Assembly (NCBI GenBank): GCA_002269645.1
Contig: NIVC01000618.1
Coordinates: 248,001-312,000, forward strand
Source of the DNA: Macrostomum lignano
Lineage: Eukaryota
Reading direction: 5' to 3'
Length of the DNA: 64,000 nt
Positions 154-48,500 of this stretch are shown here, one piece after another. The translations under genes were made by a program, and so were the position numbers. Positions within the stretch are counted from its first letter, which is position 1. Each line of letters starts with the position of its first letter. The notes under the pieces were generated by a model, which saw only the letters and a list, made by a program, of their open reading frames with translations, did no database searches and was not told the origin of the DNA.

Positions 154-1221
154 GTGGTCGTCGGCACGCCCGGCCGGGTGTTCGACATGACCAACCGGGG
201 CATCCTGCGCACCAAGCACATCAAGATGTTCGTGCTAGACGAAGCCGACGAGATGCTTGGCCGCGGCTTTAAAGAGCAAATCTATGAAGTGTTCCGCCTG
301 ATGCCCGAGGAGGTCCAGGTTGTGCTGCTGTCCGCCACCATGCCGGCCGACGTGCTGGAGGTGACCAACAAGTTCATGCGCAATCCCATCAAGATCCTGG
401 TGAAGAAGGAAGAGCTCACCCTCGAAGGTATTCGCCAGTTTTACATCGACGTTGAACGCGACGACTGGAAGCTGGACACCCTATGCGACTTGTACGAGAC
501 GCTGACCATCGCCCAGGCCGTGATCTTCTGCAACACTCGCCGCAAGGTCGAGTGGCTGGCCGAGAAGATGGGCGCCCGTGATTTCACCGTCAGCTTCATG
601 CACGGCGAGATGGAACAGGCGGTTCGCGATAGAATTATGCGGGAATTCCGTTCCGGCAGCAGTCGGGTTCTGATCACCACGGATCTGCTGGCTCGCGGTA
701 TCGACGTGCAGCAGGTGTCACTGGTTATTAACTACGACCTGCCAACGAACCGAGAGAACTACATCCACAGGTGGGTCAACACATTTTACCAAAATAAAGA
801 TGATTGATAAAATTCATGGTCACAATGCCAAGGGTTCAACTCGTTTTTCGCGAGTTGAACTTTCACGGTCAAGATGATAAATGACATCGGGTACTTGTTG
901 ATCTACTTTACGTTCAAGATGATATTTTAGAACTGCGGGTTTTTTGGTCAGTTTCAAGCTCAAACTCTTGATGATAAATGGCGTGCACTTTTGCTTAATC
1001 ATGCCAACATCACATTTCGGTTTCATGGAATTTTAAAGAAGCAATGGATATCGAATTCCTTTTTTGTCATTTGTAGAATCGGCCGCGGCGGTCGCTTCGG
1101 TAGGAAGGGCGTCGCCATCAACTTCATCACCACCGACGATCAGCGGACTCTGCACGATCTGGAGACCTACTACAACACGTCTATCGAAGAGATGCCGATG
1201 GACGTCGCCAACCTGATTTAG
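154..1221 (+). CDS. EIF4A: Translation initiation factor eIF4A (DEAD-box helicase), last two exons 154-770 and 1077-1221; 5' part outside window
   Basis: [39 protein letters not shown] motifs; HR|[11 protein letters not shown] is joined across a phase-2 GT-AG intron 771-1076; TAG at 1219-1221. Confidence 0.95.
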
Positions 1222-5500: not shown

Positions 5501-8178
5501 GCTGGCTGGCAAAGTAAAGTAGGTGCACGCGTCCTGCTGAATCATGCTGCCAGCGTAAGCAGGGCGAAGCCGCAGGCAAACAGCAGAGCAAAGCACGCGC
5601 CCAGCGCGCACATCACGCGGATCATCGGGTTGGTCTTCATCAGCCGCATGCCGCGGTTCATCTTGCGAAGATGGCGCAGCTCCCGGGCCGACTGGTCCTG
5701 CTTCTGCCTGGTCAGGGTTTCCGCGTGATTCTCCACGATGCTGGCGAAGCTCCGCAGCGGCGGCGGCCGCGACTGCTGCTCCCCGGGCGTCTCTTCGAAG
5801 CCTGCCGGGGGACCCTCACCGCCCATCTGGCGACTATTGCTGCGGCCTCCCAGCGGTTGCGCTGATAGTAGAAGTACACCAGCAGGATGCTGATGACGGC
5901 AACGCAGGCCAGGGTGAGGCAGAAGGCGATCACAATCACCGCCGAGATTATCTGCAGGACAGTGTCACCAGTGTTGAAGGCGCCGACAAAGGACTCGCTC
6001 TGCGTCATGTTGACCATCTCCGAGCCCAGCTGCTCCGCTCCGGACACGGCGCTTTTGAACTGCTTGGAGACCTCGTCGACCAGCGTGTTAAACAGGTTCG
6101 TGATCTCGTCGCCGATAAGGCTCAGGCTGCCTGTGAGCAGCGACTTGGCAGAGTTCACCTGCGGGCGGGTGCGGGGGCCGCGCTGTCAGGTCTATTGGGC
6201 TTCTCTGTTGCCCTCATTTCTTCACGTCTCCTCTCACCTCCTCTCACCTCTTTTCTTCTCCTCTCCTTTCACCCGCTCTCACCTCCTCTCATCTCCTCTC
6301 TTCTCCTCTCCTCTCCTCTCCTCTCCTCTCCTCTCCTCTCCTCTCCTCTCCTCTCCTCTCCTCTCCTCTCCTCTCCTCTCCTCTCCTCTCCTCTCCTCTC
6401 AACTCCTCTCCTCCCTCCCCTCCGCTCGCACCTGAGCCTCCACTTCGGTCACATTGAGCTTGAAGATCTTGTCCAGCAGAGTCACGATGGTGACGCTGCT
6501 ATCCGAGTCGATCCGTCGCGAGTCCAAGCCGATGTACAGCAGGCCGATGTACCGGTTGACCCCATCGCAGAGAGCCACCGGACGCCGTTCGTTGGCGACC
6601 CGGCGCACACGTCGGCAACTTTAGCGCGAAGATCTTCTCGAGTCCGATTGATCATCGTGGTGAAGGAGTTCAGCGGGTTGAGCACGCTGTCGCGGGAGCT
6701 TTTGATGGCGTTCATGCTGGCTAGAAGGAGCTTCACCAAGTTGAGAAATTTATCGAAACTGTTCAACAGCGGAGTGAGCAGGAAATCGGCCGACAGCAGG
6801 TCGAGATAGCGGTTGGCGATCCGATTCACCAGGTTCAGGATGGAGGGAAAGGCCTCATAGCAGACCTGCAGGACGCTGGTGTTGGTGCTGGTCAGGGTGT
6901 CCTCGATGAAGGCGTTCAGCTGCGGGGGAGTTGAAGTATTGAAGCCAATGTAACAGGGTTTGAGGCTTGTCTAACAGGGTTTGAGGCCTGTCTAACAGGG
7001 TTTGAGGCTTGTCTAACAGGGTTTGAGGCCTGTCTAACAGGGTTTGAGGCCTGTCTAACAGGGTTTGAGGCCTGTCTAACAGGGTTTGAGGCTTGTCTAA
7101 CAGGGTTTGAGGCCTGTCTAACAGGGTTTGAGGCCTGTCTAACAGGGTTTGAGGCTTGTCTAACAGGGCTTGAGGCTTGTCTAACAGGGCTTGAGGCCTG
7201 TCTAACAGGGTTTGAGGCTTGTCTAACAGGGTTTGAGGCCTGTCTAACAGGGTTTGAGGCTTGAACAGGGCTTGAGGCCTGTCTAACAGGGTTTGAGGCC
7301 TGTCTAACAGGGCTTGAGGACTGTCTAACAGGGTTTGAGGTCTGTCTAACAGGGTGTGAGGCCTGTCTATCAGGGTTTGAGGCTTGTCTAACAGGGTTTG
7401 AGGCCTGTCTAACAGTATTTTATCGATCTAACGGGGATGCATCCCTATCTGACAGATTTGATATTTGTCAAACAGGTGAGCAGTCTGTCCGTCTGTCTGT
7501 GTTTTTGAGATCGCTAATCCCAAGCAAGATCATGAATGTTACCAACAGACCTGCTGCACTGCAGAGTTAATGGCTACGGCGACACTGCCGCGACCGCCGC
7601 CGCTGTCCGAGGCCTTCTGCTGCCTCTGGAACAGCCTGCCGAACCCGTAGCCGCCGCTGTAGTTCCAGTAGACGCCCAGAGTCGCCGTGCAGACGGCGAA
7701 TACCGCAACCAGCAGCCCCAGCCGCAGGGCCATCAGCTTCTCCCGACGTCGGCGCCGCCACCAACGGCTGGACTTTGCCGCGGACAGGGCCAGAGAGTCC
7801 GACGAAGGCGTCGGCGAAGGATTGCTGACGGCGTACTGGTCGGCTGGTGGCGGCAGCCGTTTGCCGTGTCTGTTCGGCGAGCACGGCAGCCGGCGCTGCC
7901 AGGTGGCGAGCACTGCGATGCAGACCAGAGCGATCAGGGTGATCAGCATCCAGACAGCCGCGCCAACAAACTGCGGGATCTGCGCCGCCGCCCGGCCGAA
8001 GTACCAGTCGGCCAGGGCGACGCCGACAGACGGCCCCGCGGTCGATCCTGTCTGACTGTCGCTGCCGCCGAACCAGCCGCGGGAGTAGTCGGTGAGCAGC
8101 ACCGAGCCGTAGCTGATCAGCGGGTGAACACTCCGCCGTCCTGCTTGGGACGAACAGTCGTTGAAGATCATCCACCAT
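2525..8178 (-). CDS. Prominin-like 5-TM protein, about 950 aa; exons 8178(or 8258)-7551, 6919-6432, 6158-5245, 3919-3447, 2875-2525; this copy has small indels
   Basis: Five hydrophobic segments with two large loops (prominin topology); CKNSSATIFQIYNLVTAFNLTDLL and C-terminal CSGL..ETVVTECS..GFYVALSC resemble prominin motifs; splice phases are compatible; frameshifts are corrected by the second copy. Confidence 0.7.
3050..3400. repeat. 21-bp minisatellite (ctgaagacataggtgtccact), prominin intron 4
   Basis: Visible period; spurious ORFs repeat every 7 aa. Confidence 0.9.
3955..5225. repeat. About 14-bp satellite (ctcagctacctctg variants), prominin intron 3, with a 366-bp higher-order duplication
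   Basis: Visible; ORFs 4397-4636 and 4763-5002 are identical. Confidence 0.9.
6220..6420. repeat. (CTCCT)n low-complexity tract, prominin intron 2
   Basis: Visible pentamer run. Confidence 0.85.
6950..7415. repeat. 21-bp minisatellite (gtctaacagggtttgaggcct), prominin intron 1
   Basis: Visible period of 21. Confidence 0.9.
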
Positions 8179-8717
8179 GCTCGCCCAGCCACAGAGCTTA
8201 ACCGCTGTTTCTTCGCAACTGACCCTGCTAGCCTATGAGTCTCCCTTTTATTCGTCATTATTCTTCTTGGCCAACATAGGATAGTAGGGGGTCCATCATT
8301 GTTCCCTCCCTTTCTGTCTCACTCTCTTCTCTCAACTCGAGTTCGTCGCGTCTTCTCTTCACTGTGCAAGCGGTGCGAGAGGGCAGGCTCTGACAATAAT
8401 ACGCCTCTCTATCTACATGTAACCCCCGAGATGATTCAGGGCTTTAATGAAATTAGTATATAGCACAGACAGGGCTGTTTGCTGCGCATCACGGCCCACA
8501 CCGCGTATTATTTGTGCGCAGAGCTGTTTAATAAACTTTTTATGACAATGCCGAATAAAAAACTCGCGAGCTTTTTTATTGCACCACTAAATGAGTCGAG
8601 TTGTTTGGAAAAAGAAACAAAATAAATTTAGCAATGACTAATTTAGCTGCTGATTTGGCTACTGCGCCTCATGGCAGCTCAACTGCTTCTTGCTTTCTAG
8701 AATTGGCATTTTGTGCG

Positions 8718-9573
8718 NNNNNNNNNNNNNNNNNNNNNNNNNNNNNNNNNNNNNNNNNNNNNNNNNNNNNNNNNNNNNNNNNNNNNNNNNNNNNNNNNNN
8801 NNNNNNNNNNNNNNNNNNNNNNNNNNNNNNNNNNNNNNNNNNNNNNNNNNNNNNNNNNNNNNNNNNNNNNNNNNNNNNNNNNNNNNNNNNNNNNNNNNNN
8901 NNNNNNNNNNNNNNNNNNNNNNNNNNNNNNNNNNNNNNNNNNNNNNNNNNNNNNNNNNNNNNNNNNNNNNNNNNNNNNNNNNNNNNNNNNNNNNNNNNNN
9001 NNNNNNNNNNNNNNNNNNNNNNNNNNNNNNNNNNNNNNNNNNNNNNNNNNNNNNNNNNNNNNNNNNNNNNNNNNNNNNNNNNNNNNNNNNNNNNNNNNNN
9101 NNNNNNNNNNNNNNNNNNNNNNNNNNNNNNNNNNNNNNNNNNNNNNNNNNNNNNNNNNNNNNNNNNNNNNNNNNNNNNNNNNNNNNNNNNNNNNNNNNNN
9201 NNNNNNNNNNNNNNNNNNNNNNNNNNNNNNNNNNNNNNNNNNNNNNNNNNNNNNNNNNNNNNNNNNNNNNNNNNNNNNNNNNNNNNNNNNNNNNNNNNNN
9301 NNNNNNNNNNNNNNNNNNNNNNNNNNNNNNNNNNNNNNNNNNNNNNNNNNNNNNNNNNNNNNNNNNNNNNNNNNNNNNNNNNNNNNNNNNNNNNNNNNNN
9401 NNNNNNNNNNNNNNNNNNNNNNNNNNNNNNNNNNNNNNNNNNNNNNNNNNNNNNNNNNNNNNNNNNNNNNNNNNNNNNNNNNNNNNNNNNNNNNNNNNNN
9501 NNNNNNNNNNNNNNNNNNNNNNNNNNNNNNNNNNNNNNNNNNNNNNNNNNNNNNNNNNNNNNNNNNNNNNNNN
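8718..9573. other. Assembly gap (856 N)
   Basis: Run of N. Confidence 1.
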
Positions 9574-12500
9574 CCGGTTGTTTTGCAAAGTTAGAAAATG
9601 CCGCTTCATCTCGTTGAGGCTGCCGTTCAGAGCGGGGTAGTCACTGGTGTACATCCCGTTGAGGTTGTCAGCGAAGTGCTGGATTTAGAGATGGCCCGCG
9701 ATTATCGGACGGGTTCCTGTCCAGCAGGATTCGAACCATGGCCTGCAGATCGCCGAACAGCAGTGGCAACCGGTCGCGCGATGGCCAGCAGTGGCTTGGA
9801 CAGCTCAGCTATGCTCGCCGAGGAAGTCCTGCGTGTCGATGATGTTGGGAGACTCCGGCAGGACAGCCAGGATGCTGTCCACCTCCGATGGGATCAGCGT
9901 GCTCGCGTCCAGGTCGCCGACCAGCTTGTTGACCATTTCTCGGCCTGTGTGAAAGCATTGAGTCAGCACAATAATACTGCCAGCTCAGCTAAATGTACTT
10001 TCTGCTCAGCTACCTCTGCTTCAGCTATCTCTGCTCAGCTACCTCTGCTTAGGCTATCTCTGCTCAGCTATCTCTCTGCTTAGCTATCTCTGCTCAGCTA
10101 CCTCTGCTCAGCTACATGTACCTCCTCAGCTATCTCTGCTCAGCTATCTCTGCTTAGCTATCTCTGCTCAGCTACCTCTGCTCAGCTACCTTTGCTCAGC
10201 TACTCTGCTCAGCTACATGTACCTCTGCTCAGCTACTTTTGCTCAGCTACCTCTGCCTCAGCTACATGTACCTCTGCTCAGCTTCCTCTACTCAGCTAAC
10301 TCTGCTCAGCTACATCTGCTCAGATATCTCTGCTCAGCTACCTGTGCTCAGCTATCTCTGCTCAGCTACCTCTGCTCAGCTATCTCTGCTTAGCTATCTC
10401 TGCTCAGCTACCTCTGCTCAGCTACATGTACCTCTGCTCAGCTACCTTTGCTCAGCTACCTCTGCTCAGCTACATGTACCTCTGCTCAGCTTCCTCTGCT
10501 CAGCTAACTCTGCTCAGCTACCTCTGCTCAGCTACATGTACCTCTGCTCAGCTAACTCTGCTCAGCTACCTCTGCTCAGCTACATGTACCTCTGCTCAGC
10601 TTCCTTTGCTCAGCTACCTCTGCTCAGCTACATGTACCTCTGCTCAGCTTCCTCTGCTCAGCTAACTCTGCTCAGCTACCTCTGCTCAGATATCTCTGCT
10701 CAGCTACCTCTGCTCAGCTATCTCTGCTCAGCTACCTCTGCTCAGCTATCTCTGCTTAGCTATCTCTGCTCAGCTACCTCTGCTCAGCTACATGTACCTC
10801 TGCTCAGCTACCTTTGCTCAGCTACCTCTGCTCAGCTACATGTACCTCTGCTCAGCTTCCTCTGCTCAGCTAACTCTGCTCAGCTACCTCTGCTCAGCTA
10901 CATGTACCTCTGCTCAGCTAACTCTGCTCAGCTACCTCTGCTCAGCTACATGTACCTCTGCTCAGCTTCCTTTGCTCAGCTACCTCTGCTCAGCTACATG
11001 TACCTCTGCTCAGCTTCCTCTGCTCAGCTAACTCTGCTCAGCTACCTCTGCTCAGCTACATGTACCTCTGCTCAGCTACCTTTGCTCAGCTACCTCTGCT
11101 CAGCTACATGTACCTCTGCTCAGCTTCCTCTGCTCAGCTAACTCTGCTCAGCTATCTATGCTCAGCTTCCTCTGCTCAGCTAACTCTGCTCAGCTTCCTC
11201 TGCTCAGCTATCTATGCTCAGCTATGCTCAGCTATCCCTCTGCTCAGCTACCAGAGCACTCAGCAGCACTCGCCTCTATAAAGCTCCTTCTTGACCATGT
11301 CAGCCTCCAGCAAGTCGGTCAGGTTGAACGCAGTCACCAGATTGTAGATTTGGAATATCGTGGCGCTGGAGTTCTTGCAGTCGCGCAGCAATACGCCCAG
11401 CAGGCCCTTCGGCAGCATCGACTGCGTCAGCGGCACAGGAAATTCAATCTTCTCCGCCAGCAGCCGCTGCACCACCGGCCACAGGTCGTCGTCAATCATC
11501 CGATCGAGCTGCTTGTCCACCACGGCTGTGCTGGCTGGCAAAGTAAAGTAGGTGCACGCGTCCTGCTGAATCATGCTGCCAGCGTACAGCAGGGCGAAGC
11601 CGCAGGCAAACAGCAGAGCAAAGCACGCGCCCAGCGCGCACATCACGCGGATCATCGGGTTGGTCTTCATCAGCCGCATGCCGCGGTTCATCTTGCGAAG
11701 ATGGCGCAGCTCCCGGGCCGACTGGTCCTGCTTCTGCCTGGTCAGGGTTTCCGCGTGATTCTCCACGATGCTGGCGAAGCTCCGCAGCGGCGGCGGCCGC
11801 GACTGCTGCTCCCCGGGCGTCTCTTCGAAGCCTGCCGGGGGACCCTCACCGCCCATCTGGCGACTATTGCTGGCGGCCTCAGCGGTTGCGCTGATAGTAG
11901 AAGTACACCAGCAGGATGCTGATGACGGCAACGCAGGCCAGGGTGAGGCAGAAGGCGATCACAATCACCGCCGAGATTATCTGCAGGACAGTGTCACCAG
12001 TGTTGAAGGCGCCGACAAAGGACTCGCTCTGCGTCATGTTGACCATCTCCGAGCCCAGCTGCTCCGCTCCGGACACGGCGCTTTTGAACTGCTTGGAGAC
12101 CTCGTCGACCAGCGTGTTAAACAGGTTCGTGATCTCGTCGCCGATAAGGCTCAGGCTGCCTGTGAGCAGCGACTTGGCAGAGTTCACCTGCGGGCGGGTG
12201 CGGGGGCCGCGCTGTCAGGTCTATTGGGCTTCTCTGTTGCCCTCATTTCTTCACGTCTCCTCTCACCTCCTCTCACCTCTTTTCTTCTCCTCTCCTTTCA
12301 CCCGCTCTCACCTCCTCTCATCTCCTCTCTTCTCCTCTCCTCCTCTCTCCTCTCCTCTCCTCTCCTCTCCTCTCCTCTCTCCCTCTCCTCTCCTCTCCTC
12401 TCCTCTCCTCTCCTCTCCTCTCCTCTCCTCTCAACTCCTCTCCTCCCTCCCCTCCGCTCGCACCTGAGCCTCCACTTCGGTCACATTGAGCTTGAAGATC

Positions 12501-24400: not shown

Positions 24401-26787
24401 GAAAATGGCAACTCTATTCTGATTAGTGGCATCTCAGTTGTGAAAATGGCAACTCTTTTCTGATTAGTGGCACGTCAGGGTTAATGCACAAGCCTAAATA
24501 TGATACATACTACTGAGTTTACTCACCTGAAAATTCAACACTTCGCCGTATCGATCAAACTCCTCACTAGCGGAGCCGGTCGCCGCAGCCGCACCGTCAG
24601 CGTCGCCATTAGCAACGACACTGGAAGCGTTGCCATTGGTTCCGGCCTCGGCATCGGCGGGCGTAATGCCGAGAGCTTCGTCTTCTTCACGGGTGCGCTG
24701 GAAGCGTCGGACGGTCAGGCAGGGATCGGCGGCCGGGGCGGACGGGTTTTCTAAGAAACTGTTGCCGCTGGGATCGCGCAGGACAAGAGTGAAGCTGGGG
24801 CTGGCCGGGCGGGAGAGAAAAGGATAAGTAAGTAGATATACAGTCAGGTAGATGTGTGAACAGACAGGATAATTGTTTACAGACAGCTAGTAGATGAGTG
24901 AACAGATAGTCAGTGTGAACAGACGGTCAGATGCATGAACAGACCCGTAGATGCCTGAGCAGACGGTCAGATTAGTGAGCAGACGGTCAGATGTGTGAAT
25001 AGACAGTCAGATATGTGAACAGACGGTCCGATGTGTGAACAGACGGTCAAGTGTGTGAACAGACGGTCAAATGCGTGAATAGACGGTCAGATGTGTGAAC
25101 AGAAATGTAGATTGTGAACAGACGGTCAGATGTGTTAACAGACGGTCAGATGTGTGAACAGAAAGGTAGATTGTGAACAGACAGGTAGATTGTGAACAGA
25201 TTTGACAGGTAGATTGTGAACAGACGGTCAGATGTGTGAACAGACGGTCAGATGTGTGAACAGAAAGGTAGATTGTGAACAGACAGGATAATTGTTTACA
25301 GACAGCTAGTAGATGAGTGAACAGATAGTCAGTGTGAACAGACGGTCAGATGCATGAACAGACCCGCAGATGCCTGAGCAGACGGTCAGATTAGTGAGCA
25401 GACGGTCAGATGTGTGAATAGACAGTCAGATATGTGAACAGACGGTCCGATGTGTGAACAGACGGTCAAGTGTGTGAACAGACGGTCAAATGCGTGAATA
25501 GACGGTCAGATGTGTGAACAGAAATGTAGATTGTGAACAGACGGTCAGATGTGTTAACAGACGGTCAGATGTGTGAACAGAAAGGTAGATTGTGAACAGA
25601 CAGGTAGATTGTGAACAGATTTGACAGGTAGATTGTGAACAGACGGTCAGATGTGTGAACAGACGGTCAGATGTGTGAACAGAAAGGTAGATTGTGAACA
25701 GACTGGTAGATTGTGAACAGACAGGTAGATTGTGAACAGATGTGACAGGTATATTGTAAACAGACAGGTAGATTGTGAACAGACAGGTAGATTGTGAACA
25801 GACGGTCAGATGTATGAACAGACGGTCAGATGTGTGAACAGACGGTCAGATGTGTGAACAGACGGTCAGATGTGTGAACAGAAAGGTAGATTGTGAACAG
25901 ACAGGTAGATTGTGAACAGATGTGACAGGTATATTGTGAACAGACAGGTAGATTGTGAACAGACAGGTAGATAGTGAACAGACAGGTAGATTGTGAACAG
26001 ACGGTCAGATGTATGAACAGACGGTCAGATGTGTGAACAGAAAGGTAGATTGTGAACAGATGTGACAGGTAGATTGTGAACAGACAGTTAGATGTGTGAA
26101 CAGACAGGTAGATTTTGAGCAGACGGTCAGACGTGTGAACAGACAGGTAGATTGTGAACAGACGGTCAGATGTGTAAACAGACGGTCAGATGTGTAAACA
26201 GACGGTCAGATGTGTGAACAGACGGTCAGATGTGTGACAGGTAGATTGTGAACAGACAGCTCCCAGACTCACTTCTCAGCCTCGATCATACCCTGCATTT
26301 TGTTAATAAAAGCTGCCAGCCGATCAACTCCGTCGGGACCCGCGGAGGTGGCCGCGGAGGCCAGGGCGGAGCGCAGGTTGTCCAGCACGTCAGTCAGTGC
26401 GCCCTCCACCGTGCTGACCGAGGCCTCACTGCCGGGGAAAACCGAATCGAGCTCGGGCAGGCGAATCTCCGAGCCGGGCGCCCGGACCAGTTTCCGATTG
26501 AGATCGCTCGGCTTGCTGACTCGGAGCTTGAACTCGACTCCGTCGTCTTGGATTCGTTCCGCGTGGTCGGTGCTGCGGCTCTGGTGGCCGCAGTCAGGAC
26601 AATCAAAGCTGGACACGACGACCTCTTTGAAATAGGGAATGCGAGTGAGCAGCAGCTTGGTGACGCCCTGGCTGTGGCAGTTCATGCATAGCGACTGCAT
26701 CTCCGTCACCTGCAGTTCGTCTGGGTCCAGGCCGGGAAACAGCGGCTGCTGCGCCTGGGCATCGGCGCGCTCGGCGAGGTCGCTCAT
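21473..26787 (-). CDS. ZPR1: Zinc finger protein ZPR1, 468 aa; exons 26787-26273, 24800-24527, 22380-22064, 21773-21473
   Basis: Two CxxC..IPYFKEV..CxxC modules; two LxDPxGNS(F/Y)xxNP/L motifs; all junctions GT-AG with matching phases; total 1407 nt. Confidence 0.95.
22520..23490. repeat. About 20-28-bp minisatellite (cactaatcactgatgtgtgcctcact), ZPR1 intron 2
   Basis: Visible. Confidence 0.9.
24038..24472. repeat. 41-bp minisatellite (ggcaactctattctgattagtggcatctcagatatgaaaat), ZPR1 intron 2
   Basis: Period of 41 (24038, 24079, ...). Confidence 0.9.
24840..26258. repeat. About 20-bp minisatellite (gaacagacggtcagatgtgt), ZPR1 intron 1, with an internal duplication of about 419 bp
   Basis: Visible; the block at 24861 recurs at 25280. 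Confidence 0.9.
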
Positions 26788-26919: not shown

Positions 26920-27076
26920 AAGACAGACAGACAGAGAGATAGACACTATGACAGACAGACAGACAGACAGACAAAAAGACAGACAGACAGACAGAGAGAT
27001 AGACACTATGACAGACAGACAGACAGACAGACAGAGAGATAGACACTATGACAGACAGACAGACAGACAGACAGAA

Positions 27077-27125
<49 letters not shown>
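26824..27125. repeat. (GACA)n microsatellite upstream of ZPR1
   Basis: Visible. Confidence 0.9.
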
Positions 27126-27127
<2 letters not shown>

Positions 27128-27892
27128 GGCAGAAACGACAAAACAGACACCCAGAAACTAACACCAGCAACGTCAAAGTCAGCAAAGTATATTATATAAT
27201 AAAATCAATGGCTCATCGGTCCCGTTGTCATGACAACAAGGTGAGAACGGGCCAGCGCTTCATATTGTATAAAAGCATATTTTCGCAATTCAATCGTGTG
27301 TTGTCAGCGCGAGCGGTTTAATTTCCAAAAAGCAAAAAACACAAAACAGCAAATTTTGCAGAGCAGACAGCTGGCGCGTATCCAGCGATAGCGAGCAAAA
27401 TTCGAAATTTATCTTCAAGCCTCGGCGGCAAAAGTACATGCACAGTCATAAATAAAAGTACAGTAAGATTGACAAAAATTGCGAAATTTAGGTAAACCTA
27501 AAATGACATAATAAAAGACTTAAATTAACAAAAACATGCCATCCAAACTGATAGGCAATAAAAGCGTCAATGTTACAAACTAAACGCAAGCTAGCACAAT
27601 AAATGATTATAGATAATATAAATATAGCACACGAATTCATGCAATAAACTGATATTTTTTCATACAAAACAAAAAACTAAAAGACAGTGTTGCAAAATTG
27701 CGGGTCAGACTATAGAAAATCATTCAGCTGGCATCGATTTCGTTCAAGATGCAGAGTCGGATTTCGAACCAGTTGAGCTAATTGCGATCTGAAACCAATT
27801 TTAAACGGTGCATTGATTGAGTTTGAGCTTGAATCCTGCATTACATTATTGTCTTCATAATCAGATTAATTTAGTAACGCGACTTTTCGACT

Positions 27893-29187: not shown

Positions 29188-29850
29188 TCAGGAGTTGCCG
29201 CCCTCAGCAGGAGGAGTGGCAGTAGCAGCGGCGGCGGCGGTCTTCCTAACGGAGTGCACTTCCTCGCTGATGGCCTCTAAAGCGGCCATGGTTTCCTGGT
29301 AAACCCGCTTGCAGATGCGCCGCTTCTCTTCTAGCGTGTCCACCCGGGCCTTCTGCTCTTCTAGCAGGCGGCGCTGCCGCTCGCAAGCGTCGAAATACGG
29401 CTTGGCCCGACGGGCCACCGAGGCGCGCACCGATCGTTCAAGTCGGGCCGCGGCGGCTTCGAGCTCGTGGCATCGTCTAGCCAGGCGCTGATGCTCGGCC
29501 GAGGATGTTGGCGAGGCTTGGCGCAGAAATCTAGCCGCGGCGGCTCGCGCCTCCAACTGGGTCAGCTGGCAACGCCGCCTGGCTTCGTAGGCCGGCCGGG
29601 CCGCTTCGATACAGCTTGGACCGGCCGCTACACGGGCCGCCGTCATGGCCTCCAGGCCGGCCGATTGGCGGCGCCGGAACTCGGCGCGGGCCTCGGTCAG
29701 GTCGGTCTCGGCCGAGTTCAGCTGCTGGGCGGACAAGTTCAACCGTTCGAGCTCGGCGGACACGCGAGAGGATAATGAAGAAACAGACGGGGTCGGCGAG
29801 TGCAGCGAAGGCGACGGCAGAGCAGGGGATGTCGGAGCGGAGGCTGGCAT
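29188..29850 (-). CDS. SH3BP5: SH3BP5/Parcas/REI-family coiled-coil protein (putative Rab11 GEF), 220 aa, single exon
   Basis: RVSAELERLNLS..LNSAETDL; ARPAYEARR; AKPYFD; YQETMAALEAISEEVH match family hallmarks. Confidence 0.8.
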   Translation of the reverse strand: MPASAPTSPALPSPSLHSPTPSVSSLSSRVSAELERLNLSAQQLNSAETDLTEARAEFRRRQSAGLEAMTAARVAAGPSCIEAARPAYEARRRCQLTQLEARAAAARFLRQASPTSSAEHQRLARRCHELEAAAARLERSVRASVARRAKPYFDACERQRRLLEEQKARVDTLEEKRRICKRVYQETMAALEAISEEVHSVRKTAAAAATATPPAEGGNS

Positions 29851-31162: not shown

Positions 31163-33377
31163 TCAAGGCTCGAAGCAGAACGCCAAGCCCAGCTGGTGGC
31201 CACCGCCGCCAAGATTTTTACAATCCAAATTGCTGCTCATTGTCACGCGGAAGCCGTCGCGCACCTGGAAACTGTAGGACGAGCCCAACAGGCTGCGATT
31301 GTTTAGGCGCAGTTTAAAAGCGCTACCATCGTTTAATCGGTACTTGGCCGCTACGCCCAGATCCGCGGCGTGGCTGGAGCCTGAGTAGCACAGCTTCAGG
31401 CCCGCCTCCAGGCCACGAGACAGGCGGTGATAAGCTGAAGCGCAATAGTTGCTGCTGTTCTCAACTCCAGCGTACAGGGACAGGTCCTTCACCTGCGTGT
31501 AGGTGTGGTTTGAGCAGCAATTGACTTTCTATTCTAATTTGTTTCTATTTTTATTAGGGATGTCTCTGTACTTCAGGAACGAGTTGGTAGCTTCAGATGC
31601 ATCTCTGTACTTCAGGGAGAGGTTGGATGATAGCTTCAGATGCATCTCTGTACTTCAGGGAGAGGTTGGATGATAGCTTCAGATGCATCTCTGTACTTCA
31701 GGGAGAGGTTGGATGATAGCTTCAGATGCATCTCTGTACTTCAGGGATGGGTTGGTAGCTTCAGATGCATCTCTGTACTTCAGGGATGGGTTGGATGATA
31801 GCTTCAGATGCATCTCTGTACTTCAGGGATGGGTTGGTAGCTTCAGATGCATCTCTGTACTTCAGGGAGAGGTTGGATGATAGCTTCAGTTGCATCTCTG
31901 TACTTCAGGGAGAGGTTGGATGATAGCTTCAGATGCATCTCTGTACTTCAGGGATGGGTTGGTAGCTTCAGATGCATCTCTGTACTTCAGGGATGGGTTG
32001 GATGATAGCTTCAGATGCATCTCTGTACTTCAGGGATGGGTTGGATGATAGCTTCAGATGCATCTCTGTACTTCAGGGATGGGTTGGATGATAGCTTCAG
32101 ATGCATCTCTGTACTTCAGGGATGGGTTGGATGATAGCTTCAGATGCATCTCTGTACTTCAGGGATGGGTTGGATGATAGCTTCAGATGCATCTCTGTAC
32201 TTCAGGGATGGGTTGGATGATAGCTTCAGATGCATCTCTGTACTTCAGGGATGGGTTGGTAGCTTCAGATGCATCTCTGTACTTCATGGATAGGTTGGAT
32301 GATAGCTTCAGATGCATCTCTGTACTTCATGGATAGGTTGGATGATAGCTTCAGATGCATCTCTGTACTTCATGGATAGGTTGGATGATAGCTTCAGATG
32401 CATCTCTGTACTTCAGGGATGGGTTGGATGATAGCTTCAGATGCATCTCTGTACTTCAGGGATGGGTTGGATGATAGCTTCAGATGCATCTCTGTACTTC
32501 AGGGATGGGTTGGTAGCTTCAGTCTTCAGATGCATCTCTGTACTTCATGGATAGGTTGGATGATAGCTTCAGATGCATCTCTGTACTTCATGGATAGGTT
32601 GGATGATAGCTTCAGATGCATCTCTGTACTTCAGGGATGGGTTGGATGATAGCTTCAGATGCATCTCTGTACTTCAGGGATGGGTTGGTAGCTTCAGATG
32701 CATCTCTGTACTTCATGGATAGGTTGGATGATAGCTTCAGATGCATCCCTGAGGTATTTCAGGGAGAGAAATTACTAGTAATATTCAGAGGGGTTGGACA
32801 CCCCAGAGAATCAGTATTCAAGGAGGGTTCGGCAGCTTCAGGAGATGACTCAGACCTGAAAAGCCGCACCGTAGCTAAGTTTGGTCAGTTTCTGTCTTTC
32901 AGTATCGAATCCAACGCTGGCACCGGCGAAGAAGTTCTGATAGCCGAACACAGCGCTAGACAGTACGGTGGGAAAATTAGTCTTAAACTCCAAATCCAGC
33001 GCAGTGTTCACATTGGCCCGTTTAAATCCTGTTTTAACTTTGGCGCTACGTTTCCCCGTGTTGGGCTCAAAATTAATCTCGAATGAATTCTTTAGACCCT
33101 TAGCTAAGCGGTCTTCGATGGCAACCTCCGCTGTAATGGCATTACTGGTTTTCCATTTATTAGTCAGGGTGATGCCGTAGTCTCTAAACGATCGCTTAAC
33201 TTCAACATCCGCAGCCGCCCGGCCAGTTTCCATATCGTGCGAGCCGCTAGACTTGAATTCGGAGTCCAACAGCTGGGCTTTGGTTTTTAGCTCGGCTTTG
33301 ACTGAGCCAAAATTGAAGTCTTTATTGTAGAGATCGTTGGCATCTTTGCTGAGATCGCTGAAGCTTGGAGGAGCCAT
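31163..33377 (-). CDS. VDAC: Mitochondrial porin VDAC, 283 aa; exons 33377-32856 and 31492-31163
   Basis: MAPPSFSDLSKDANDLYNKDF; YGITLTNKWKT; PNTGKRSAKVK; NLGGGGHQLGL; phase-0 GT-AG intron; canonical length. Confidence 0.95.
31557..32747. repeat. 43/39-bp minisatellite (gcttcagatgcatctctgtacttcagggatgggttggatgata), VDAC intron
   Basis: Period of 43 with 39-bp variants. Confidence 0.95.
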
Positions 33378-40865: not shown

Positions 40866-43258
40866 ATGAGCAGCTTCGATTCGACCAGTGGCCTAGTCAT
40901 ATTCAATGTTGGTGGGCGGCGGCACCAGGTGTTCTTGCAGACTCTCGCGCCCTGGCCTGAGAGCCTCCTGTGCCGTCTGGCCCGTGGCCAGCTGCGCAGC
41001 ATCGCTGACTCTGACGGCGCCGTGTGCATCGACCGCGATCCCGACACCTTCGGCTTGGTGCTCAACTTTCTGCGCTATCGACGCTCACCTCTGGACATTG
41101 AATCGGTTGGATCGGCCAAATTTCATCTGCTGCTAGAAGACAGCGACTTCTATTGCCTGCCTGAACTGCGAAACTGCCTGCTGCAGCTAAGAGAAACTGC
41201 CGAATCTGCTGAGACTGCAAAAGCTTCATCAACTGAGGCAAATATCAGCTTGGAGTCCTGTGCAGATGAGCAGAGTGAGTGCTCTGTGGTTCGGGCTGAC
41301 CGATTGTCACTAAGCCACATGTGAGGGATTTCCCAAGGTCATTTGTTAGATAAACTAAGCCACATGCGAGGGATTTCCCAAGGTCATTTGTTAGATAAAC
41401 TACGAGTAATTAAGCCACGTGAGGGATTTCCCAAGGTCATTTGTTAGATAAACTAAGCTACATGTGAGGGAGTTCCCAAGGTCATTTGTTAGATAAACTA
41501 AGCCACATGTGAGGGATTTCCCAAGGTCATTTGTTAGATAAACTAAGCCACATGCGAGGGATTTCCCAAGGTCGTTTTTTAGATAAACTAAGCCACATGT
41601 GAGGGAGTTCCCAAGGTCATTTGTTAGATAAACTAAGCCACATGTGAGGGAGTTCCCAAGGTCATTTGTTAGATAAACTAAGCCACATGTGAGGGAGTTC
41701 CCAAGGTCATTTGTTAGATAAACTAAGCCACATGTGAGGGAGTCCCCAGGGCATTTGTTAGATAAACTAAGCCACATGCGAGGGATTTCCCAAGGTCGTT
41801 TTTTTAGATAAACTAAGCCACATGTGAGGGAGTTCCCAAGGTCATTTGTTAGATAAACTAAGCCACATGTGAGGGATTTCCCAAGGTCATTTTTTAGATA
41901 AACTAAGCCACATGCGAGGGATTTCCCAAGGTCATTTGTTAGATAAACTAAGCCACATGTGAGGGAGTTCCCAAGGTCATTTTTTAGATAAACTAAGCCA
42001 CATTTGAGGGATTAAAAAGAGTTAGGCAGACAGATCGGCACGAAGACAGTCAGCCAGCCTTCAATCGAGCAATCCTCCCAACTCCCCACCTCCGCAGGCT
42101 CGCTGATAACGCTGGACGTAGGCGGCACCCGCTACTCAACCTCCTTGTCTACCCTGACCCGCTACCCCGACTCCATGCTTGGCGCCATGTTCTCCGATCG
42201 ATTTCGATTGAATAATCCGGCCGCAATCGATCGCGACGGCAATCTGTTTCGTCACGTGTTGAACTTTCTTAGAAACGGCCGCCTCAGCCTGCCGGACGGA
42301 TTTGCCGAGGGCGAGGCGCTGCTAGCCGAGGCGGAATTCTATCAGATCCAGCCGCTGGTGCAGCAGCTCCGCGATTGGCTGGGTGGCTACGCGGCCAGCC
42401 GGGCCAAAGGCGTCTATTTGGAAGTGAGTCGAACCGGACAAAATTTGTGGGAATTCATTTGTGGTGCAATCCATTATATTTGACTTGATTATCATGAGGA
42501 ACTTTAGGAATCACCCGGCCGTTTTTTACTGGCAGCACACGGACTGCTCCGTCACGTGACCGCTCTAAAGCCAATTAGAGTTGCTCCTAGTTGTAGGCAA
42601 TTTTGTCACGTGACCGCTCTCGGCCAATTAGAAATGGGCCTGTTTCTGTTTGTGGGCTAATGTTGTCTGTCACGTGACCGCTCTCGGCCAATTAGAAGTG
42701 GGTCTGGATGTGGTCTAATGTCACGTGACCGCCTTGGGCTAATTAGAAATAGGCCTGGGTGTGCGCTAAGGTGTTCACATGACTGCAGCGGTGTACCAAA
42801 TTAAGAACAATCGTGAATAACCGGCAGTGCCACCTCCGCGCCTGTAGGTGAAGGACAATGTAGTCTGCTTTCGCGGCTTTCACATCACCACCAGCCTGAC
42901 CGGGCCGCTGGCCTATCTGAAATCCGTGCCCCCATTTGACACCGAACTCGCCCGCCTCACCCAGCCAGCGCCGATGCTCAGCCAGTTCTGCGCCCCGCTG
43001 CCATTCTACACCGCCTGGGTGAAGGGCAGCATGGAGGAGGTGTACCTGAACTCAGACGCCAGCAAGAGCCGACTTGAATGGGCCTCGCTGCTGCGGGCTA
43101 CTGGCTGGCGACTCTGCAGCACGTCCAGCTGCTGCAGTTCCAGCTCTGATCAGACTTTTATTGTTGTTGATAAATGGTTTTTACCGTCTGAGCAGCTCTA
43201 TAACAGCATATTTCTGCAGGGCGGCGACGGGGCTGGGCAGCAGCAGTCTATGGGCTAA
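40866..43258 (+). CDS. KCTD-like protein with two T1-type BTB/POZ domains, 381 aa; exons 40866-41274, 42098-42423, 42848-43258
   Basis: FNVGG..IDRDPDTFGLVLNFLR and LDVGG..TLTRYPDSMLGAMFS..IDRDGNLFRHVLNFLR; GTGAGT donors with matching phases; total 1146 nt. Confidence 0.85.
41310..42012. repeat. 45-bp minisatellite (ataaactaagccacatgtgagggatttcccaaggtcatttgttag), KCTD intron 1
   Basis: Visible; 15-aa repeat in the spurious ORF. Confidence 0.95.
42551..42745. promoter_or_regulatory. Four copies of GTCACGTGAC-N9/10-CCAAT (fourth is CTAAT): an E-box/CLEAR plus CCAAT module in KCTD intron 2
   Basis: Motif at 42551, 42605, 42669, 42720; function is inferred only. Confidence 0.4.
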
Positions 43259-44771: not shown

Positions 44772-45403
44772 TACTCGTTTGTGGAATTTCAGAGCTTGTT
44801 GAATTACTAGTTTGTGGAATTCCAGAGCTTATTGAATTACTAGTTTGTGGAATTTCAGAGCTTATTGAATTACTAGTTTGTGGAATTTCAGAGCTTGTGG
44901 AATTTCAGAGCTTGTAGAATTTCAGAGCTTGTAGAATTTCAGAGCTTTTAGAATTTCAGAGCTTGTGGAATTTCAGAGCTTGTGGAATTACTAGTTTGTG
45001 GAATTTCAGAGCTTATTGAATTACTAGTTTGTGGAATTCCAGAGCTTATTGAATTACTAGTTTGTGGAATTTCAGAGCTTATTGAATTACTAGTTTGTGG
45101 AATTTCAGAGCTTGTGGAATTTCAGAGCTTGTGGAATTTCAGAGCTTGTAGAATTTCAGAGCTTGTAGAATTTCAGAGCTTTTAGAATTTCAGAGCTTGT
45201 GGAATTTCAGAGCTTGTGGAATTTCAGAGCTTGTAGAATTTCAGAGCTTGTAGAATTTCAGAGCTTTTAGAATTTCAGAGCTTGTAGAATTTCAGAGCTT
45301 GTAGAATTTCAGAGCTTGCAGAATTTCAGAGCTTGTAGAATTTCAGAGCTTGTGGAATTTCAGAGCTTGTAGAATTTCAGAGCTTGCAGAATTTCAGAGC
45401 TTA
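44772..45403. repeat. 17-bp minisatellite (gtggaatttcagagctt) with longer variants
   Basis: Visible. Confidence 0.9.
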
Positions 45404-45534
45404 TAAACTTGTATTTTTTTAGATCTATGATATTTGATGATCGAGGAAATGAAAGTTACCTCACTGTCTACCTAATTCATCAGGACTTCCCGTTCTAAAT
45501 CAATCATTAACGTTATTAACACAAAAAGCGACTG

Positions 45535-48500
45535 TTAATTTTGATTTCCCTCTGTAGCGCCGTTGCCATAGCCTTCCAGTCCGTTCCTGGCCAGGTAGTC
45601 TCGCAGCCACAGGGCCAGGTACTCAATTGGATCGCGGGGCCGGCGCAGGGCCACCTCGGCTACGCCCAGAGACAGGGCCTTGGCTGCAGTGGGGAGTGAG
45701 GTTGTTGCAGCTTTTACTATAGAAATAGTCTATCTGCGATAGTCAATGAGTAGGATGAACTTTTCAAGTTTACTACTGTGCTCTCGATGTCTTTATCTCC
45801 GTCTCAAACTGTCTATCTCATTTTTACTAGCTAAGCTGCCCCTTCTCCTTCGCTAATCCAGCCTCACTCCTTCTCACTCTTCCCCTCTCCCTCTCACTCT
45901 TCCCGTCTCCCTCCCACTCTTCCCCAAGCTCCCTCTCACCCTTCCCTACTCCCTCTCACCCTTGCAGTCTTTTTACTCGTCTCCAACTGCAAACGAGTAT
46001 TGAGCCCTCCCTTGCGTTCTCTATAAGATTCAGTAGAATAAGGAAGCTGAGCTTTATCAAACAGCATTTCCCACTCACCCACGGCTCTGAGCTCCCACGG
46101 GAAGCTGCGGTAGCGCATGTCCACGGCTGCGGCGGCGGCCTGAGGCGGCGCTTCCGGCTGCACAAGCAGCGGTCTGGCCGCTTCCGCTCGGCGCAGTCGG
46201 CGCGGAAAACTGCGCGACATCAACAGCAAAGAAGATGACGGTGTCGTTGCCGATGATGGAGGCTGAGGAGGCGGCGGCAGCGTCGATGAAAGATGAAACT
46301 TCACTTGCTTTGCACCACCACTTGCCGCAGCCTCTTCCGCCACAGCTGCTTCGGCTTCATCAGCAAAGTCTGGGTTCTGCTCGTCGCTGCAGATGCTTTT
46401 GATCTCCGTCAGGGTGCCGCTGCTGCCGCCTCCGATGCCACCGCCTTCGGACTGGCACCGGCTGACGTCCTCGGCTGACGAGGACGACGAATCGTCTAGG
46501 ACTCCTGGAATGGAAATCGACACGGAGGAGGCCCTGCCGCCGACGTCGCCAGTCTGAAAGCTCCTGCTCCGGCGATGTCGGCGGCACAGTCGGCGAGGTC
46601 CCCGGATGTCGCTGACCGGCGGCCGCAGCAGGTGGCGGCACCGGCTGCCCGTTCGGCCACTGCAGCTGAGCGTGGCCGCCTCCGCGTCCGAGTCGCTGTC
46701 CGAATCGCCCGCGGCGGCCACCTCTCGGCAAATTCGCTGCAGAGTCTGACTGGCCGAGGCCGTGGTCGTGTTGTCCGTGTTCTCGTCCGAGCTCTCGTCC
46801 AGCTTGTTGCGGTCGATATCCAGCCACTCCGTCAGCTGCTGGTACTCCAGGTTCGACTGAAGGTGGAGTGCGCGTTCGTCCTTGGGGTCACTCAGCTAAT
46901 CCATCTGTCACTCAGCTAATCCATCCGTCACTCAGCTAATCCATCTGTCACTCAGCTAATCCATCTGTCACTCAGCTAATCCATCCGTCACTCAGCTAAT
47001 CCATCCGTCACTCAGCTAATCCATCTGTCACTCAGCTAATACATCTGTCACTCAGCTAATCCATATGTCACTCAGCTAATCCATATGTCACTCAGCTAAT
47101 CCATCTGTCACTCAGCTAATCCATCTGTCACTCAGCTAACCCATCTGTCACTCAGCGAATCCCTCTGTCACTCAGCTAATCTCTCTGTCACTCAGTTAAT
47201 CTATCTGTCACTCAGCTAATCCATCTGTCACTCAGCTAATCCATATGTCACTCAGCTAATCCATATGTCACTCAGCTAATCCATCTGTCACTCAGCTAAC
47301 CCATCTGTCACTCAGCGAATCCCTCTGTCACTCAGCTAATCCATCTGTCACTCAGCTAATCTATCTGTCACTCAGCTAATCTATCTGTCACTCAGCTAAT
47401 CCATATGTCACTCAGCTAATCCATCTGTCAATCAGCTAATCCATCTGTCACTCAGTTAATCTATCTGTCACTCAGCTAATCCATCTGTCACTCAGTTAAT
47501 CTATCTGTCACTCAGCTAATCCATCTGTCACTCAGCTAATCCATCTGTCACTCAGCTAATCCATCTGTCACTCAGCTAATCCATCTGTCACTCAGCTAAT
47601 CTATCTGTCACTCAGCTAATCTATCTGTCACTCAGCTAATCCATATGTCACTCAGCTAATCCATCTGTCAATCAGCTAATCCATCTGTCACTCAGTTAAT
47701 CTATCTGTCACTCAGCTAATCCATCTGTCACTCAGTTAATTCCTTTATAGACAGTCGTGCTCACCTTGCCGGACCTGCCCAGCAGGTAATAGGTAACCAT
47801 ACGACCCTTGCCCTTCACGTGTACCGGCTCCCTCTGTTCAACCTCGTACGGGAAGTCGTCGATGCAGCGTTGGAAGCTGGCGCTGATGTGCACGGAGTCC
47901 GGCCGGCCGCAGGTCATCATTCTGGAGGCCACGTTGACCGTGTCGCCGAACAGGCAGTAACGGGGCGTCATCAGGCCGACCACGCCAGCCACAATGCTGC
48001 CGGAGTGACAGCCCACCTGAATGCGCAGCGGCTCGACCGCGGCCGTATCGGCCGCTCCGGTCGGCGAGGAGTCGCCGGACGGCCGAACAATCCGGTGCGC
48101 CTCGGCCAGCATGTCCAGAGCCATCTCGGCGATGTGCGCCGCGTGGTAAGGCGTGGCCCGCGGCGCGCCCGACATCAGCATGTACGAGTCACCGATGGTT
48201 TCCACCTGTTGAGTTTGCGATGGGGATGCAATGATGAAGTCCAGTTTTCATGATTCAGAGACACAATGATGCGGTCCAGTTTTCTTAATTCAGAGACACA
48301 ATGATGCGGTCCAGTTTTCATGATTCAGAGACACAATGATGCGGTCCAGTTTTCTTAATTCAGAGACACAATGATGCGGTCCAGTTTTCTTAATTCAGAG
48401 ACACAATGATGCGGTCCAGTTTTCTTAATTCAGAGACACAATGATGCAGTCCAGTTTTCTTAATTCAGAGACACAATGATGCGGTCCAGTTTTCTTAATT

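Follow-up and report, generated by a model that had tools for sequence, protein, structure and literature searches.

How soluble guanylate cyclases (sGCs) are placed in cells is only partly understood, the known routes being prenylation and, in C. elegans, a scaffold carrying Dpy-30 and ankyrin domains. A 64,000-nucleotide stretch of contig NIVC01000618.1 of the flatworm Macrostomum lignano (hereafter the window, whose numbering is used throughout) raises the question of whether a cyclase may itself bear a docking module. An earlier note on this DNA had proposed that the cyclase exon continues, by in-phase splicing, into a 259-codon exon and a last exon that ends in a Dpy-30 motif. From the evidence assembled here we consider it likely that the locus encodes, in nine exons, a heme sGC subunit with a linker and a DYDC-like Dpy-30 docking tail, and that this protein belongs to a flatworm clade of such cyclases.

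Based on open reading frames and on tblastn with full-length homologues, the sGC gene spans 55707-45535 on the minus strand and its predicted product has 933 residues, in which the HNOB, HNOBA, cyclase, linker and Dpy-30 regions follow in that order. The features of the model are:

Exon 1, 55326..55707, minus strand: ATG at 55707, from the ORF and tblastn to full-length homologues; majority of the HNOB (heme) domain with the proximal-His candidate H104 (HNOB at 140 bits; conserved His column).
Exon 2, 53436..53842, minus strand: end of HNOB (Y132-x-T134-x-R136) and start of HNOBA.
Exon 3, 52680..52900, minus strand: HNOBA; boundaries less certain than those of any other exon.
Exon 4, 51750..51879, minus strand: end of HNOBA.
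Exon 5, 51070..51216, minus strand: coiled-coil linker.
Exon 6, 49452..49598, minus strand: N-terminal part of the cyclase domain, with K440; junctions agree with PAA88558.1.
Exon 7, 47765..48205, minus strand: remainder of the cyclase domain (E480, D484, C562, N569, R573), ending in GRSGK before GTGAGC.
Intron 7, 46857..47764, minus strand: GT to AG, nearly all of it a 20-bp minisatellite (46887-47740, 42.7 copies).
Exon 8, 46079..46856, minus strand: 259 open codons plus one base; low-complexity, acidic/basic, Ser-rich linker.
Intron 8, 45684..46078, minus strand: donor G/GTGAGT at 46079/46078, acceptor CTGCAG/CC at 45684/45683.
Exon 9, 45535..45683, minus strand: Dpy-30 helix-turn-helix (to about 45586), short tail and stop TAA at 45537-45535.

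The donor of exon 7 reads AAG/GTGAGC at 47765/47764 and the acceptor of intron 7 CTTCAG/TCGAAC at 46857/46856, while intron 8 is of phase 1 and splits an Ala codon (G/CC) 14 residues upstream of a conserved Arg/Lys-Pro. Exon 8, rich in Ser (15%), Ala (12%) and Arg (10%), with S, A, P, R, G, D and E amounting to 64%, starts in alignment with the trematode sequence immediately C-terminal to the cyclase domain, and its final seven or so codons (46100-46080) form the onset of the first Dpy-30 helix; the C-terminal part of the spliced product reads ...[54 protein letters not shown], followed by the stop TAA at 45537-45535. The full model can be aligned from one end to the other with the full-length proteins of Schistosoma rodhaini (residues 1-914 on 1-903, E 4e-143) and Opisthorchis viverrini (residues 1-911 on 1-907). 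The donor of exon 2 at 53436 was picked solely on its homology score, 94 against 92 for the alternative, and intron 4 of the GenBank contig carries an additional 4.3 kb that lack both ORFs of at least 120 aa and repeats, direct or inverted, of at least 40 bp.

Both junctions on which the fusion depends, 47765>46856 and 46079>45683, are used by a transcript-derived GenBank protein, PAA88558.1 (BOX15_Mlig007736g1), which is identical (100%) to the spliced 454-residue query over 100% of its length. This identity, together with the coordinates verified on the minus strand, bears out the in-phase path from the cyclase exon through the 259-codon exon to the last exon, and of the two acceptors that the earlier note had offered for intron 7 it selects 46856. 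The other one, 46880, is in frame and would add eight codons, and was rejected because the transcript-derived protein splices at 46856. The annotation in GenBank has as its only source RNA-seq or de novo transcript assemblies with TransDecoder (PMC5730564). PAA88558.1 is truncated at its N-terminus, beginning at the internal Met at 51195 in exon 5, and the continuity of the HNOB exons with the cyclase exons in M. lignano is indicated by colinearity, canonical splice sites and the orthologues. An isoform which retains intron 7, lacks the tail and ends at the stop at 47732 may also be produced.

In the assembled protein the HNOB domain scores 140 bits (7.6e-41, cut-off 25.5), HNOBA 173 bits (7.7e-51, the profile being matched contiguously over positions 4-216 of 216) and Guanylate_cyc 191 bits (2.5e-56), and their order is canonical. 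The heme motifs are recognizable: H104 falls in the conserved LH column, and Y132-K-T134-R-R136 corresponds to Y-x-S-x-R with Thr for Ser. Likewise, E480, C562, N569 and R573 align with the guanine-binding Glu/Cys and the Asn/Arg of the homologues, of which Glu and Cys specify guanine and Asn and Arg are ribose/transition-state residues (PMC3591389). Of the two metal-binding Asp residues, which a catalytic subunit requires if it is to work alone as a homodimer, the first is replaced by K440 (ICFSKVV) and the second, D484, is retained; an equivalent Lys is found in all ten trematode and monogenean relatives that cover this segment. A Lys for the first Asp with the other residues kept is the beta1-type pattern, and judged by these positions the subunit is beta-like; the Lys thus predicts a partner subunit that supplies the Asp pair, with which the cyclase probably works. 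The best matches outside flatworms are named 88E-like, beta-2-like or gcy-31, so that by name, not by phylogeny, and by its domains the protein is placed as a heme-type (H-NOX) sGC subunit of the Gyc-88E/beta2-like group.

The C-terminal motif was recognized by Pfam as Dpy-30 (PF05186) with 27.3-31.8 bits, the gathering cut-off being 22 and the match spanning only positions 10-38 of the 42 in the profile; the score being above the cut-off, the outcome that the earlier note had named as fatal to its proposal, the lack of any Dpy-30 HMM hit, did not arise. When a profile of the flatworm tails was compared with the PDB, DYDC2 (3.4e-9 and 5.9e-9) and DYDC1 (2.7e-8) were retrieved ahead of RSP2 (1.1e-4) and DPY30 (8e-3), and by this measure the Macrostomum motif is nearest to the radial-spoke proteins DYDC1/2. 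In a monomer prediction by AF2 the tail forms two helices, 878-898 and 903-917, with pLDDT 94-98. The predicted tail superposes on DYDC2/DPY30 at 0.7-1.0 Å over 33-34 residues in Foldseek (probability 0.9-1.0), and each of the best 31 PDB matches is to a chain from a Dpy-30-domain protein or from a complex containing one; so small a domain yields weak E-values, none better than 0.17, and the sole RIIa structure matched has an E-value of 9.8. Pfam, PAA88558.1, the PDB profiles, AF2 and Foldseek thus concur in one mRNA and one ORF in which an H-NOX-type cyclase is followed at the C-terminus by a DYDC-like Dpy-30 module, as had been suggested.

The author of the earlier note had also stated that no sGC with this module was known to them. 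This holds for the literature, in that searches on Dpy-30/DPY30 with guanylate cyclase, on Schistosoma sGC/H-NOX and on Mlig007736 returned no paper describing the architecture, but the Macrostomum protein is not unique, as the same C-terminal motif occurs in at least eight trematode sGC models of public protein sets. These come from S. turkestanicum, S. spindale, S. mekongi, S. rodhaini, Heterobilharzia (three models), Trichobilharzia and Opisthorchis, and several of their tails score 17.6-20.4 bits, under the Pfam cut-off for Dpy-30. The carriers of the architecture are consequently Macrostomum, at least three schistosomatid paralogue types, which are sequence-distinct groups and not tree-defined, and Opisthorchis.

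A word-indexed search with an alignment of three tails gave four candidates and one match and was replaced by an exhaustive profile search of 1.84 billion representatives, which yielded 141 significant matches. All cyclases among these are trematode, no cyclase with a Dpy-30 tail being found outside flatworms, and no hidden cyclase fragment was found in the mid-length matches; proteins combining ankyrin and Dpy-30 are also present. Applied to the 120 closest homologues, neither a strict regular expression nor the tail HMM detected a Dpy-30 motif outside flatworms, and the tail profile matches three, all of them flatworm. In contrast, a CaaX prenylation box closes 59 of the 120, none of the 59 being a flatworm protein, and the flatworm C-termini (EGNQN in Macrostomum, IIHSA and similar in trematodes) have no CaaX. 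As far as these C-termini tell, the Dpy-30 module occupies the place that the CaaX box has in most relatives from other phyla, and the flatworm lineage has therefore apparently swapped one C-terminal targeting device, CaaX, for another, Dpy-30. To call the exchange flatworm-wide is an extrapolation from Macrostomorpha and Trematoda.

With regard to function, we propose that, the cyclase being an obligate dimer, its tail or tails would build, or become part of, a four-helix D/D bundle of the Dpy-30 type, in whose groove a scaffold protein could lodge an amphipathic helix. Through the long flexible tether, cGMP synthesis would then be anchored to a particular place in the cell, for example a cilium or a sensory ending, the beta-like subunit still needing a partner to provide the Asp pair. 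Dpy-30 domains are known to dock enzymes and spoke proteins onto the amphipathic helices of RSP3 (PMC3494852). By analogy, docking on an amphipathic-helix scaffold is plausible, and an AKAP-style tether, possibly ciliary, is reasonable given the roles of Dpy-30 elsewhere (PMC3494852; PMC6953435); a ciliary localization as such is speculation. A bolder version, which we regard as rather improbable, would build the cyclase into motile or sensory cilia, the tail sitting either on an RSP3-type amphipathic helix, in a radial spoke or in the central apparatus, or, in gas-sensing neurons, on a scaffold of the cilium, such that O2 or NO sets the local ciliary cGMP and directly tunes beating or sensory output, a protein dock having replaced the ancestral CaaX lipid anchor.

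The Dpy-30 helix pair might instead serve mainly as an additional dimerization clamp between two cyclase subunits, or link two dimers, with no external scaffold involved. Dpy-30/RIIa modules and cyclases are all obligate dimers, and since at least three trematode paralogue types bear the motif, homo- or heterodimers with two tails are possible. Nevertheless, sGCs already dimerize via the HNOBA, coiled-coil and catalytic domains, and little would be gained from a clamp placed beyond a 260-residue low-complexity linker; moreover, known Dpy-30 D/D dimers expose the helix-binding groove used in docking (PMC3494852), and here the module stands in for the CaaX box, which is a localization signal. 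We therefore hold the clamp to be possible yet unlikely, and docking on a scaffold remains the preferred reading.

Far less probable is that exons 8 and 9 form a separate gene or transcript and that the fusion is an artefact of assembly or annotation, for instance from a polycistronic precursor in an organism that uses trans-splicing. About 7% of the assembled transcripts of M. lignano are multi-gene precursors (PMC5730564), a read-through stop is present at 47732, and some Schistosoma models (P0122, P0124) give the tail as a stand-alone protein. These models, however, start at the Met of KGKGxMKTY, which lies inside the last cyclase strand, and in S. turkestanicum a single exon encodes the last cyclase strands together with the tail. 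Although the trematode proteins are gene predictions, four of them (S. rodhaini, S. spindale, O. viverrini and Heterobilharzia P0132) hold all four domains in one protein. In Macrostomum both junctions obey the GT-AG rule and keep the reading frame open across the 259 codons, Schistosoma shares the residue position and phase of the last intron, and the first predicted Dpy-30 helix straddles the junction of exons 8 and 9, all of which argues for a single gene. That the likeness to Dpy-30 is a chance match of a short amphipathic C-terminus, as the mere 29 profile positions and the orthologues below the Pfam cut-off might suggest, is practically negligible in view of the Macrostomum score over the curated cut-off, the recovery of DYDC2/DYDC1 from the PDB at 3e-9 to 3e-8, the Dpy-30 match in all 25 of the exhaustive-search proteins scanned with Pfam, and the 52% identity to mouse DYDC2 over 33 residues with a predicted fold at 0.7 Å rmsd.

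A Dpy-30 module on the enzyme instead of a CaaX box would constitute a third route of sGC placement, encoded inside the cyclase gene. The tail would offer a direct handle on the scaffold and on the site of gas-evoked cGMP signalling, and transgenesis is established in Macrostomum. The clade has expanded in schistosomes and liver flukes, and the searches made here detected no member outside flatworms; it would thus represent a lineage-specific feature of parasite signalling.

Compared with known systems, the flatworm protein shares the HNOB-HNOBA-coiled coil-cyclase order with Gyc-88E, GCY-31/33/35/36 and vertebrate beta2, which are its best sequence homologues. Like these atypical and beta2-like sGCs it has a post-catalytic C-terminal extension serving localization, a role that is predicted on the flatworm side, but the flatworm clade has no CaaX, bears Dpy-30 and has a Lys at the first metal-binding Asp. 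Gyc-88E and beta2 presumably retain this Asp and can act as homodimers, and prenylated sGCs of C. elegans are reportedly targeted to dendritic endings, a result of Gross et al. (2014) as cited in PMC6953435. With sGC beta1 (GUCY1B1) the common ground is the catalytic pattern (first Asp missing; Glu, Cys, Asn and Arg kept) and the heme His; beta1 is not the closest by sequence, and it has neither a long tail nor a docking module. NME5/RSP23 and AK7 likewise join a nucleotide-metabolizing enzyme to a Dpy-30 D/D module, and we know of no cyclase among the Dpy-30-docked enzymes or radial-spoke proteins; in contrast to these two and to DYDC1/2 and RSP2, the flatworm module lies at the extreme C-terminus, after a linker of about 260 residues. 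To the small, axonemal DYDC1/2-RSP2 proteins with their N-terminal Dpy-30 the likeness is limited to one domain, and a 933-residue cyclase is not a member of that group. In C. elegans, ARCP-1, a protein with ankyrin and DPY-30 domains, organizes GCY-9, GCY-35 and PDE-1 at the sensory endings/cilia of gas-sensing neurons (PMC6953435); there the Dpy-30 is on the scaffold, whereas the flatworm cyclase carries its own. Finally, PKA RII-AKAP belongs to the same clan, whose four-helix D/D bundles take up an amphipathic helix, the family in that case being RIIa and not Dpy-30.

The soluble guanylate cyclase (sGC) gene of the window was modelled as nine exons on the minus strand. Upstream exons were located by tblastn with full-length homologues, being colinear and on the same strand as the cyclase exons, and their canonical splice sites were picked by frame and homology, with the boundaries of exons 2 and 3 being the least certain of the model; exons 7 to 9 complete it.

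55707-55326, minus strand, exon 1 (tblastn, splice-site choice)
53842-53436, minus strand, exon 2 (likewise)
52900-52680, minus strand, exon 3 (likewise)
51879-51750, minus strand, exon 4 (likewise)
51216-51070, minus strand, exon 5 (likewise)
49598-49452, minus strand, exon 6 (likewise)
48205-47765, minus strand, exon 7, C-terminal half of the class III cyclase domain, ending GGC AAG/GTGAGC (47765/47764, window sequence)
46856-46079, minus strand, exon 8
45683-45535, minus strand, exon 9

The 933-aa product contains the Pfam domains HNOB (7.6e-41), HNOBA (7.7e-51), Guanylate_cyc (2.5e-56) and Dpy-30. The earlier note had proposed in-frame splicing of the cyclase to a Dpy-30 motif, and its coordinates, phases and peptide all proved correct, on the minus strand. 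Intron 47764-46857 (minus strand) consists nearly throughout of a 20-bp minisatellite (46887-47740, 42.7 copies) and closes with the acceptor CTTCAG at 46857. The open frame of exon 8 runs through 259 codons and one further base and is of low complexity (S 15%, A 12%, R 10%; S, A, P, R, G, D and E together 64%), and its donor G/GTGAGT and the acceptor CTGCAG/CC (45684/45683) yield a split Ala codon, after which the spliced C-terminus (54 residues, not reproduced) runs to the stop TAA at 45537-45535. The linker encoded by this exon, otherwise poorly conserved, has an acidic Ser-rich stretch directly after the cyclase domain and contains clusters of R-R-x-S-type motifs (e.g. RRHRRSRSF), also found in the trematode tails P0002, P0125 and P0129 (SRRSSKS, KRRQSQP); these could be kinase sites.

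The spliced 454-aa query matches PAA88558.1 (BOX15_Mlig007736g1, M. lignano; 546 aa, Guanylate_cyc and Dpy-30 by Pfam) with 100% identity over 100% coverage, and therefore this protein holds both proposed junctions, 47765>46856 and 46079>45683; the alternative acceptor at 46880 was rejected, as PAA88558.1 uses 46856. This is indirect transcript evidence: the M. lignano annotation rests solely on transcripts assembled either de novo or with RNA-seq guidance, using StringTie, TACO and the TBONE boundary pipeline, and TransDecoder supplied the ORF calls (PMC5730564). PAA88558.1 is N-terminally truncated, starting at an internal Met (51195) in exon 5. GenBank leaves the HNOB and HNOBA exons (51216-55707, minus strand) unannotated. 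In GenBank contig NIVC01000181.1, intron 4 holds an extra 4.3 kb (5643-9931 of the extracted locus), absent from the window at about 51262, in which we found no Ns, no ORF of at least 120 aa and no terminal repeats, direct or inverted, of at least 40 bp. This extra sequence may have broken transcript assembly and may explain the exon 5 start. Introns 1, 2, 3, 5, 6 and 7, six of the eight, each contain a separate long minisatellite, with periods of 22/241, 24, 20, 29, 35 and 20 bp, and further arrays lie upstream (35 bp) and downstream (17 bp) of the gene, the region spanning 44779-56447; arrays have 14 to 56 copies, and the copy numbers are not the same as in the GenBank contig.

The surroundings of the gene comprise the following features.

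57080-57991 and 60168-60692, minus strand, upstream neighbour, sterol reductase of the ERG4/ERG24 family (DHCR7/LBR-like; 4.3e-56)
154-807, plus strand, DEAD-box helicase exon
17702-19324, minus strand, SHNi-TPR/NASP-like acidic protein (weak match)
26269-26787, minus strand, ZPR1 exon
29188-29850, minus strand, SH3BP5 exon
32850-33377, minus strand, VDAC porin exon
40866-41324, plus strand, BTB_2 (KCTD-like) protein exon
61483-63435, CT/GA-rich simple repeat of about 2 kb, with spurious 560-650-codon ORFs (LSLSLS...) on both strands

An N run (assembly gap, about 8700-9590) lies between near-identical blocks of about 4.3 kb (4000-8300 and 10000-14300), some 6 kb apart and sharing ORF translations (4189-5112 with 10239-11141; 7536-8201 with 13570-14274); the duplication is either a true tandem one or a product of assembly around the gap.

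Several lines of evidence identify the tail. Pfam PF05186 matches it at 27.3-31.8 bits (gathering cut-off 22) over profile positions 10-38 of 42. A profile of eight flatworm cyclase tails, searched against all PDB sequences, scored best with DYDC2 (3.4e-9 and 5.9e-9) and DYDC1 (2.7e-8), followed by Chlamydomonas RSP2 (1.1e-4), DPY30 (8e-3) and NME5 (0.013-0.035). From the tail alignment AlphaFold2 predicted two helices (residues 878-898 and 903-917, pLDDT 94-98), the first starting in exon 8 and continuing in exon 9. Each of the best 31 Foldseek PDB matches of this prediction belonged to a Dpy-30-domain protein or to a complex that includes one (0.7-1.0 A over 33-34 residues, 41-52% identity), with E-values of 0.17 or worse because the domain is very small. 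Accordingly, the motif is real and, as the earlier note held, DYDC-type.

The same motif (consensus pL.LGlTE.aIv.P.dPi.YLg.WL..Y) ends sGC models of Schistosoma turkestanicum, S. spindale (two paralogues), S. mekongi, S. rodhaini, Heterobilharzia americana (three), Trichobilharzia regenti and Opisthorchis viverrini. Four of these unite all four Pfam domains in one protein, the architecture whose search had been suggested, and the alignment of the Macrostomum model with these runs over the full length (e.g. residues 1-914 with S. rodhaini 1-903, E 4e-143). Seemingly stand-alone Schistosoma tail models have as their first residue the Met of KGKGxMKTY, which lies within the last strand of the cyclase; on the S. 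turkestanicum chromosome a single exon (15605-16456 of the extracted locus) covers both the last part of the cyclase domain and the entire tail; and the last intron is phase 1, in an Ala codon 14 residues before a conserved (R/K)P, in Macrostomum and two Schistosoma sequences alike. Together these results rule out a separate tail gene or a chimeric annotation. S. turkestanicum has a second copy of the gene (27056-27445 of the same locus; P0123), whose HNOB exon shares 90% identity with S. rodhaini. It lies downstream of the first copy, beginning 5.6 kb away, in what looks like a tandem duplication of the Dpy-30-bearing sGC.

In the catalytic site, the first metal-binding Asp is replaced by Lys (ICF[ST]KVV) in Macrostomum and in all 10 trematode and monogenean relatives covering the segment, while the second Asp (D484), the guanine-binding E480 and C562, N569 and R573 are retained. 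In human sGC, alpha1 supplies both Asp residues and beta1 the other catalytic residues, and a homodimer of beta subunits has no activity (PMC3591389). Based on this division, we predict that the flatworm subunit is beta-like and needs a partner to supply the Asp pair; no such partner was identified, and all Dpy-30-bearing paralogues found have the Lys.

The architecture and its conservation are shown by these data, whereas the role of the tail is inferred from what the domain is established to do. As dimers, Dpy-30 modules build a bundle of four helices, and amphipathic helices bind in its groove. Such AH-D/D pairs serve as anchors for effectors of several sorts, among them a nucleoside diphosphate kinase of the radial spoke (PMC3494852); the flatworm tail would likewise form such a bundle and bind an amphipathic helix. 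In C. elegans, gas-sensing guanylate cyclases are brought to sensory endings and cilia by two routes, prenylation and the ankyrin/DPY-30-domain scaffold ARCP-1 (PMC6953435 and its references). Because of these precedents of docking and localisation, the tail probably serves to localise the enzyme, acting as a handle at the end of a long, flexible tether; that it is purely a dimerisation clamp, the main alternative, appears rather unlikely. Either NO or O2 may be the ligand. A specifically ciliary or axonemal site for this handle is likewise doubtful, being suggested only by the tail lying closer to DYDC and RSP2 than to DPY30. A Dpy-30-tailed sGC offers a concrete, testable way in to the site of flatworm cGMP signalling.

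When the tail profile was run exhaustively with HMMER against 1.84 billion cluster representatives, 141 matches reached E <= 1e-3. Every protein above 500 aa that was matched at its C-terminus was a trematode sGC. The other long matches scanned with Pfam gave ankyrin plus Dpy-30 or Dpy-30 alone, leaving aside P0128 and P0130, whose repeated partial matches are apparently spurious; the ten mid-length matches scanned had Dpy-30 alone and no cyclase. Among the 120 closest cyclase homologues the tail HMM matched the three flatworm proteins only, whereas 59 of the 120 have a C-terminal C-a-a-X box with Ser/Thr before it, in taxa that include molluscs, annelids, brachiopods, nemerteans, echinoderms, cnidarians, chelicerates and vertebrates, and none of the flatworm members does. 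The simplest reading, drawn from Macrostomum and the trematodes, is that the flatworm lineage swapped a C-terminal prenylation signal for a protein-docking module. Literature searches turned up no account of an sGC that carries a Dpy-30 module; the Guanylate_cyc and Dpy-30 pair is already visible in the automatic annotation of public entries. The enzyme family and the docking module are each known; their combination here is undescribed and lineage-restricted, and takes the place of a known targeting signal. The three long non-cyclase matches with another recognisable domain, P0131, P0195 and P0247, are ankyrin-repeat plus Dpy-30 proteins, one such match coming from the firefly Lamprigera yunnana, and theirs is the domain pairing of the C. 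elegans guanylate-cyclase scaffold ARCP-1.
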